DNA of 64,000 bases. Source: Oculina patagonica (Eukaryota). The position numbers were made by a program, and so were the translations under genes. The notes under the pieces were generated by a model that saw nothing but the letters and a program-made list of their open reading frames with translations, did not search any database and was not told the DNA's origin. The stretch is taken from NCBI RefSeq assembly GCF_052425735.1, contig NC_135769.1, positions 8,494,001-8,558,000 of the forward strand, in the 5' to 3' direction. Numbering within the stretch: the first letter of the stretch is position 1; every line of letters begins with the position of its first letter. Positions 49,241 through 49,788 of the stretch are shown here, one piece after another.

Positions 49241-49788
49241 GTAAGAATTACATGTTGTAAAGGGGAGTTAAGCGGTTGGAGAAGAAAGAGACAAAATGAT
49301 TTTAGTAAGTGTGGAAGATCTTTGAGACAACCCTAAAGATTCACTGGAGGCGCGCCCGGAGTCACTCGTCCGAGTGAAAACAGAATCTACCGACAAAATA
49401 ATTGTTGTACATTTCATCAGCGGGAGACTCATTTGGTTGCAATGAAGCAATGGTTTTGGCCTTTAGATCCATAGGAGTAATTTATTTGCAAACATTGAAT
49501 TTCATAGCGAGTATTTGGCAAAACTTAATAAAATGGACTTAACTCGGCCGTGACACAGTCCCTTTAATGATAAGTGACAAGAGACTTTATTGAAGAACAA
49601 CAACTTGGTAAAACGAACAAAATTTCTACGATTGTAAACGTAGAGCCATAGTGAGACGCAAAGAGTTGATTTTGAGATTTTAAGTACCATATCTAGAAGA
49701 CGGACTGGTCATGCTACAATGTTACTATAACTCAACGTAAAGTTACAGGACTCAAAATGATATTCAGAGACGTTTTATTTAATTATAA

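Follow-up and report, generated by a model that had tools for sequence, protein, structure and literature searches.

A rotated gene-bearing segment in the intron of a SCRiP-like gene of Oculina patagonica, with features of reinsertion from a circularised copy

The window analysed in this work is a stretch of 64,000 nucleotides from the genome of Oculina patagonica (contig C12:8494001-8558000), which was studied together with searches within the 529-Mb assembly, and it contains a cluster of genes for small cysteine-rich secreted proteins. Unless another contig is named, positions are those of the window, extended on the same scale beyond its limits, and features lie on the forward strand unless stated otherwise. 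The host genes were labelled SCRiP-like from architecture alone, with a hydrophobic N-terminus, read as a signal peptide, provided by the first exon and eight cysteines distributed across a 39-codon last exon, an arrangement that fits SCRiP genes (PMC2652719). When the exons were queried separately, no Pfam match and no significant match to the sequences of solved structures were obtained. Self-comparison of the window and of the 112 kb around it, in which no N stretches were met, established the layout of the locus, including a segmental duplication of about 34 kb (-23391 to 10199 versus 32706 to 69211) whose copies, referred to here as A and H, are 97-98% identical. Each copy holds the whole of an interrupted gene and a neighbouring SCRiP-like copy; about 22 kb separate the two, and an intact paralog, copy C, lies within those 22 kb.

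Copy C, which was found at 17293-17790 by self-comparison of the window, has an intact intron of 256 bp (17411-17666, from the intron alignment) that represents the closest available sequence to an empty site. In gene H, the first coding exon, with start codon and signal peptide, was read directly at 49123-49240 and is 91% identical to copy C at 17106-17447; it is followed by the splice donor GT at 49241, also read directly, and by a 5' intron remnant (49241-49420) that aligns with the copy C intron at 17411-17476 and 17467-17480. On the other side, as seen in copy A, a 3' intron remnant leading to the splice acceptor (4395-4527) aligns with copy C at 17515-17666 and precedes the last coding exon (4528-4649, stop codon at 4647-4649), which was read directly, carries the eight cysteines and is homologous to 17667-17790 and 9444-9606. 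The insert between these remnants, which measures 11,991 bp in copy A and 15,435 bp in copy H, has expanded the coding-sequence intron from 256 bases to 12-16 kb, the order in each duplicated copy being exon, upstream junction (J1), insert, downstream junction (J2) and exon.

In gene H, J1 is located between 49420 and 49421, with intron homology up to 49420 and the right part of a miniature element (MITE), beginning CGGGAGACTC, from 49421 onwards. In copy A, J2 is located where the left part of a MITE ends (...ATAACGCCCGG) at 4391, or at 4394 when GGTGA is counted, and homology to the intact intron of copy C restarts exactly at 4395. The copy A insert spans -7596 to 4394, its upstream junction having been found by genome search 7.6 kb before the window, and the J2 of copy H lies between the window-equivalent positions 64855 and 64856, 855 bases beyond the window end. 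An earlier note on this DNA had placed the insert start at about 49421 and its A-side end at about 4393, both next to host intron homology, on the assumption that A and H were equivalent units. J1 and J2 (4391-4394) agree with these positions, and alignment to the copy C intron on each side confirmed the host flanks. The equivalence was likewise sustained when the missing junction halves were found outside the window, the J1 strings of A and H being letter-identical and the J2 strings likewise, with the downstream junction of H at the same array position as that of A. Additionally, in a contig check of J1, this junction was bridged by Logan contigs of runs X1, X3 and X6, which come from three studies and bear the organism labels A, B and D, with 38-39 letters on the MITE side; the contigs of the organism C run did not bridge J1, and unitigs stop on its MITE side, where the repeat begins. 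Since J1 was seen in contigs from three organism labels, the insert is real and not an assembly artefact.

The MITE found at both insert ends measures about 398 bp, with TTAA on both sides and terminal inverted repeats of 16-18 nt, as established from 14 genomic copies aligned with their flanks. Its TTAA duplication, inverted repeats, short length, high copy number and lack of coding capacity are those of piggyBac-type elements, and it is probably a TTAA-type, piggyBac-like MITE, the superfamily being assigned from the TTAA alone and the termini (AGGG...CCCT) being unlike the classic piggyBac CCC...GGG. At the insert start, the right part of the element (positions ~252-398) occupies 49421-49567, reaching the right inverted repeat and the TTAA at 49564-49567. 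In the 3' part of the insert in copy A (1-4394, from self-comparison), one internal intact MITE is found at 2105-2502 and the terminal left part at 4138-4391. A 616-base probe over the break point returned more than 3000 first-look candidates genome-wide, of which the scored ones span probe positions of about 59-456, and intact copies, genome-wide and on contig C6, run uninterrupted through the break point with the consensus ...ATAACGCCCGGGAGACAC.... By comparison with these copies, the right end of the insert stops at ...GCCCGG and the left end starts CGGGAGAC, with 0-3 bases (CGG) shared. Both ends map to a single point inside the MITE, as the earlier note had claimed, and do so to within 0-3 bases, the uncertainty reflecting bases that the target may share with the insert ends as microhomology (CG at J1, GG or GGTG at J2). 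The chance that two independent ends would agree within +/-3 bases is about 7/2185 (0.3%) per array unit, and 7/13100 (0.05%) on a single-copy donor-like segment. The idea that the array was born in place from the insert ends was rejected, because the intact MITEs genome-wide and on C6 read through the break point and the split state is derived.

From 49421, the insert matches positions 1-305 of a tandem-array unit of 2185 bp, and its first segment (49421-49785, array-unit positions 1 to ~370) corresponds to C6:16286280-16286649, which on C6 lies downstream of the array. The segment is interrupted by a second high-copy MITE of about 553 bp, MITE-2 (49786-50338), a later insertion 93-97% identical to many genomic copies. 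MITE-2 has long terminal inverted repeats, and its arrival is dated after the transfer and before the A/H duplication; contigs in runs X1, X5 and X6 skip 49781-50336, which reflects either polymorphic absence of MITE-2 or reads from the C6 paralog. The first segment then continues at 50334-50367 (C6:16286634-16286666), where C6 homology ends ...TTTGAGGC. Beyond a fusion point, the cargo (50489-57706) is collinear with C6:16273560-16283120 and broken by lineage-specific repeats. It is followed by an H-specific extra piece of ~935 bp (57707-58641), present in neither A nor C6, by a degenerate array with a partial unit (58669-60480, unit positions 1172-2185) that ends at the first internal intact MITE, by a complete 2185-bp unit phased on the break point (60481-62665, from array comparison) and by the last array unit of H (62668-64000), which continues to window-equivalent position 64849. 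The C12 array units also contain about 470 extra CGCG-rich bases after unit position 305 (60786-61250 and the same phase elsewhere), absent from the first partial unit of the insert and from C6, which points to another insertion, after which the unit carrying it was amplified locally.

The cargo includes a single-exon open reading frame of 127 codons, read directly on the reverse strand at 53975-54358 and antisense to the host gene, whose predicted product is a secreted three-finger (Ly6/uPAR-like) protein. Ly6/uPAR domains have about ten cysteines in three-finger spacing and a terminal CCxxxxCN motif. In the predicted protein, the cysteine pattern and a C-terminal CCNSDYCN were read directly, and Pfam UPAR_LY6 was matched with E=0.005 and 17.6 bits, under the curated cut-off of 24.8. 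The proteins of A and H do not differ from each other and share 66-69% identity with the C6 copies, homologues being located at -3076 to -2696, C6:16275775-16276140 and C6:16293374-16293727.

Relatives of the cargo in the genome consist of the two C12 copies, the two arms of an inverted duplication on C6 (~90% identical) and older paralogs on contig C2 (80-85%). The C6 duplication is a large palindrome of cargo and array at C6:16273735-16296412, with arms 8% diverged and separated by a central spacer of ~1.67 kb (16285207-16286874). The closest paralog of the insert is this C6 locus, at about 7% divergence (arms 6.8-8.7%), and relative to it the insert is rotated with its orientation kept (A-B to B-A). 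The insert begins with C6 16286280-16286666, passes through a filler, and then runs collinearly from C6 16273560, through cargo, degenerate array and units, back to 16286282. Its first base thus corresponds to C6:16286280 and its last base to C6:16286282, and its first 386 bases (49421-49785 plus 50334-50367) match the far end of the C6 array segment. The order of this closest paralog is therefore permuted and not collinear with respect to the insert, as the earlier note had anticipated for the donor. Since the donor-like locus is retained on a separate contig, the event was duplicative and non-tandem. The present C6 locus is not itself the donor but descends from it or is its sister, because it is 7% diverged and was later rearranged by a deletion and by the inverted duplication.

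At the fusion point (50368-50488), array-unit position ~390 is linked, without homology, to the upstream edge of the cargo. C6 homology stops at 50367 and returns at about 50476-50489, and the interval holds a fragment of about 93 bases (50369-50461) followed by a short local triplication of a AGCCTGAT-type motif. This filler is present in both A and H and absent from C6, and it is 91-96% identical to a dispersed repeat family that also forms tandem arrays of ~120 bp; one such array, with a period of ~120 bp, extends over contig C1:4781874-4797994. The fragment can be read as filler captured at a non-homologous closure. Its interpretation as a complete small transposon insertion was rejected, given that family members extend past both sides, so that it is an internal fragment. 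In the earlier note, excision of a circle by recombination between array units had been proposed, which is not supported by the non-homologous, filler-bearing fusion point or by the C6 locus, where no array was found in the 17 kb examined upstream of the cargo.

At the target, the H flank can be traced to about C 17480-17487 (13/14 matches, a score equalled by 12/2000 shuffles) and the A flank begins at C 17515, the copy C intron at ~17481-17514 having no counterpart in A or H. About 27 bases of the target intron were deleted, a count that is approximate given that copy C is only 86-91% identical. The integration junctions show 2-4 bases of possible microhomology and no target-site duplication. 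The loss of ~27 bases with nothing duplicated represents an end-joining scar and not a transposase scar. The same kinds of junction scars have been reported in cattle and human cases (PMC7450558), whereas the coral filler, at ~93 bases, exceeds the 1-13-base scars of the published cases. The 5' intron remnant also contains a unique extra piece of 101 bp (49299-49399), located 21 bases upstream of J1 between 8-bp direct repeats GACAAAAT. It is absent from paralog C, and a genome search for other copies found none beyond the two C12 copies. Its origin may lie in the same repair event, as a second templated insertion, or in a small insertion that had nothing to do with it.

As judged from the sequence, C12 is the recipient and the direction of transfer is unambiguous, because paralog C retains, short and uninterrupted, the intron that the insert splits, and because a split MITE must have arisen from an intact copy. 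Divergence, measured over 1.15 kb around the cargo gene, amounts to 1.0% between A and H, 6.8% between the insert and C6 arm 1, 8.7% between the insert and C6 arm 2, and 8.0% between the two arms, and the tree of the insert and the two arms is a three-way split. A deletion of unit positions 41-1053 is common to both C6 arms and missing from the C12 copies, which places the transfer before the C6 deletion and inverted duplication. In copy A, the split MITE is accompanied by a single intact internal one, which matches the two MITE copies of C6 arm 1, and H later gained one array unit and the 935-bp piece. The insert is common to several labelled species, which fits its age.

It is proposed, with a probability of roughly 0.6, that a circularised copy was reintegrated by end joining. 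According to this proposal, a segment of about 13 kb in the ancestral C6 locus, comprising the three-finger cargo and a short tandem array with two MITE copies in it, would have been copied, and its outer ends would have been joined by non-homologous end joining with capture of the ~93 bases of filler. The closed molecule, either an extrachromosomal circle or a comparable closed product of replication, would then have broken once, at the CCCGGG stretch inside one MITE, and the opened molecule would have been end-joined into a double-strand break in the 256-bp SCRiP-like intron on C12, at the cost of about 27 target bases and without target-site duplication. Subsequently, MITE-2 inserted, the array gained units and the ~34-kb segment was duplicated to give A and H, now 1% apart. 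The permutation, the single-point ends, the fusion point with its filler, the junction scars, the direction of transfer and the order of events are shown by the sequence itself. A permuted order is what is generally accepted as the mark left in sequence by a circular intermediate, and it is from this mark that we infer the physical circle. The rotation and the single-point ends thus favour the proposal of the earlier note that a circle opened inside the MITE and integrated in the intron, although the same sequence could result from fragments stitched together in one step.

In such a one-step complex insertion, no free circle would have existed, and three donor breaks or template switches, of the chromoanasynthesis/MMBIR type, would have delivered two adjacent fragments (the cargo up to the MITE point and the next 386 bases) stitched in swapped order with the filler between them. 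The three junctions expected are identical to those observed, filler and microhomologies included, and the unique 101-bp piece 21 bases from J1 could be a further templated insertion. Moreover, the junction scars of published cases do not separate end joining from replicative template switching (PMC7450558). However, one extra simultaneous break is needed, and the observed order and orientation is 1/8 of those possible for two fragments, a coincidence that a single opening does not require. One-step stitching is thus considered unlikely, without being negligible.

It is also conceivable, if quite improbable, that a linear fragment was cut from a tandemly duplicated donor twice at the same point in two MITEs, this point being fragile or recognised by an enzyme. 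In the MITE consensus, the break point falls within a CCCGGG palindrome, another old C6 breakpoint lies 41 bases away, and the array supplies repeated sites. However, the break-point region has no hairpin and no unusual folding stability (z = +1.25), and the MITE copies have no inverted repeat centred on the break point; a hairpin or cruciform at this position, considered separately, was discarded as none was found. In addition, the adjacency of first segment, filler and cargo that a tandem donor requires was found nowhere but in the two C12 copies, and C6 lacks an array in the 17 kb upstream of the cargo. Furthermore, a tandem donor popping out by recombination would itself yield a circle.

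A transposon that moves as a circle or by rolling-circle replication was also considered, with the shared point representing its joined ends. Helitrons and Helentrons have a 5' TC, a 3' CTRR and a hairpin at the 3' end and insert at AT or TT with no duplication, and Cryptons and DIRS elements encode a recombinase and recombine conservatively at a shared core without target loss. Head-to-tail tandem units with abutting ends would look alike, and the reverse strand of the insert begins with TC. Nevertheless, the break point lies inside an unrelated TTAA-type MITE with thousands of copies reading through it, and neither a CTRR end nor a 3' hairpin is present. The scan of the insert for open reading frames found none above 128 codons, hence no transposase, recombinase, Rep/helicase or other long frame. 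The ~27 target bases lost argue against conservative recombination, and the relatives are the C12, C6 and older C2 paralogs only, with no dispersed family. Both Helitron/Helentron and Crypton/DIRS assignments were accordingly rejected, and a transposon of this kind is regarded as extremely improbable.

Finally, an error of assembly, or an origin in nothing more than the A/H duplication, is barely credible even in a region so repeat-rich and duplicated, in view of the occurrence of each junction twice, in copies ~1-2% different elsewhere, and of the bridging of J1 by independent contigs of three organism labels. Tandem duplication by itself was rejected, since it makes one new junction type, J1 or J2, and not both. 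The converse scenario, insertion of a 45-kb SCRiP segment into a MITE, was rejected as less parsimonious given the order of exon, J1, insert, J2 and exon in each copy.

Reintegration of a circularised copy, the preferred reading, belongs to a kind of event that is already known, and the coral case is unusually well resolved. Rotation, single-point ends, non-homologous fusion, end-joining scars and a distant, retained donor, by which insertional duplications of the eccDNA type are recognised, are all found here. To our knowledge, duplication by reinsertion of circularised copies has been inferred in few mammalian cases only, with the donor often not known, and our literature search found no paper on circle-mediated gene duplication in corals. 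In human segmental duplications, order changes from A-B/C-D to B-A/D-C were described by Chicote et al. 2020 (PMC7450558), and duplications mediated by eccDNA were treated by Takahashi and Innan 2020 (PMC7188851). The coral insert resembles these in its same-orientation rotation, its breakpoints without homology, its short indels or microhomology and its non-tandem site. Unlike the human duplications, it has an unambiguous donor and recipient, the recipient being a gene intron with an intact paralog, its opening point is resolved to 0-3 bases through a repeat consensus, and the organism is a cnidarian.

The colour-sidedness KIT translocations of cattle involved circular intermediates (Durkin et al. 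2012, summarised in PMC7450558 and PMC12235870). As far as these summaries describe them, they share with the coral event a duplicative interchromosomal transfer, a circular permutation of the copy with respect to its donor, a single point each of fusion and of opening, microhomology, small scars and breakpoints in interspersed repeats. By the same summaries, the coral segment differs in its size, 13 kb versus hundreds of kb, and in that no second, serial event is seen, in contrast to the serial KIT translocations. Additionally, the coral event is ancient and has become fixed under several species labels, and the copy lies inside an intron with the coding exons intact and has a ~93-base filler at the fusion point. 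A likeness also exists with circles formed from tandem repeats by homologous recombination, in that the coral segment includes a tandem array and its break falls within a repeat carried by that array; however, its closure is non-homologous and outside the array phase, and the C6 array is found on one side of the cargo only.

With every junction resolved to almost single-base precision, the coral case also provides a search pattern for invertebrate genomes, namely rotated paralogs with split repeats at their ends. The proposed route can place a secreted three-finger gene antisense in the intron of a toxin-like gene, the pair then being amplified together, and would let unrelated secreted-protein genes come to share a locus. 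A further, very doubtful suggestion is that the break at CCCGGG was non-random, a host or transposon-derived nuclease opening MITE-bearing circles there. If so, array-borne MITEs would be portable integration sites, and cargo genes, here a fast-evolving three-finger gene, would be repeatedly moved into toxin-gene clusters. As to the three-finger gene itself, its coding exon has diverged faster than its non-coding surroundings, with synonymous divergence from C6 of ~0.20 and non-synonymous divergence of 0.15-0.21, compared with ~0.07-0.09 for the whole 1.15-kb region, and the copy in C6 arm 1 carries a stop codon near the C-terminus.
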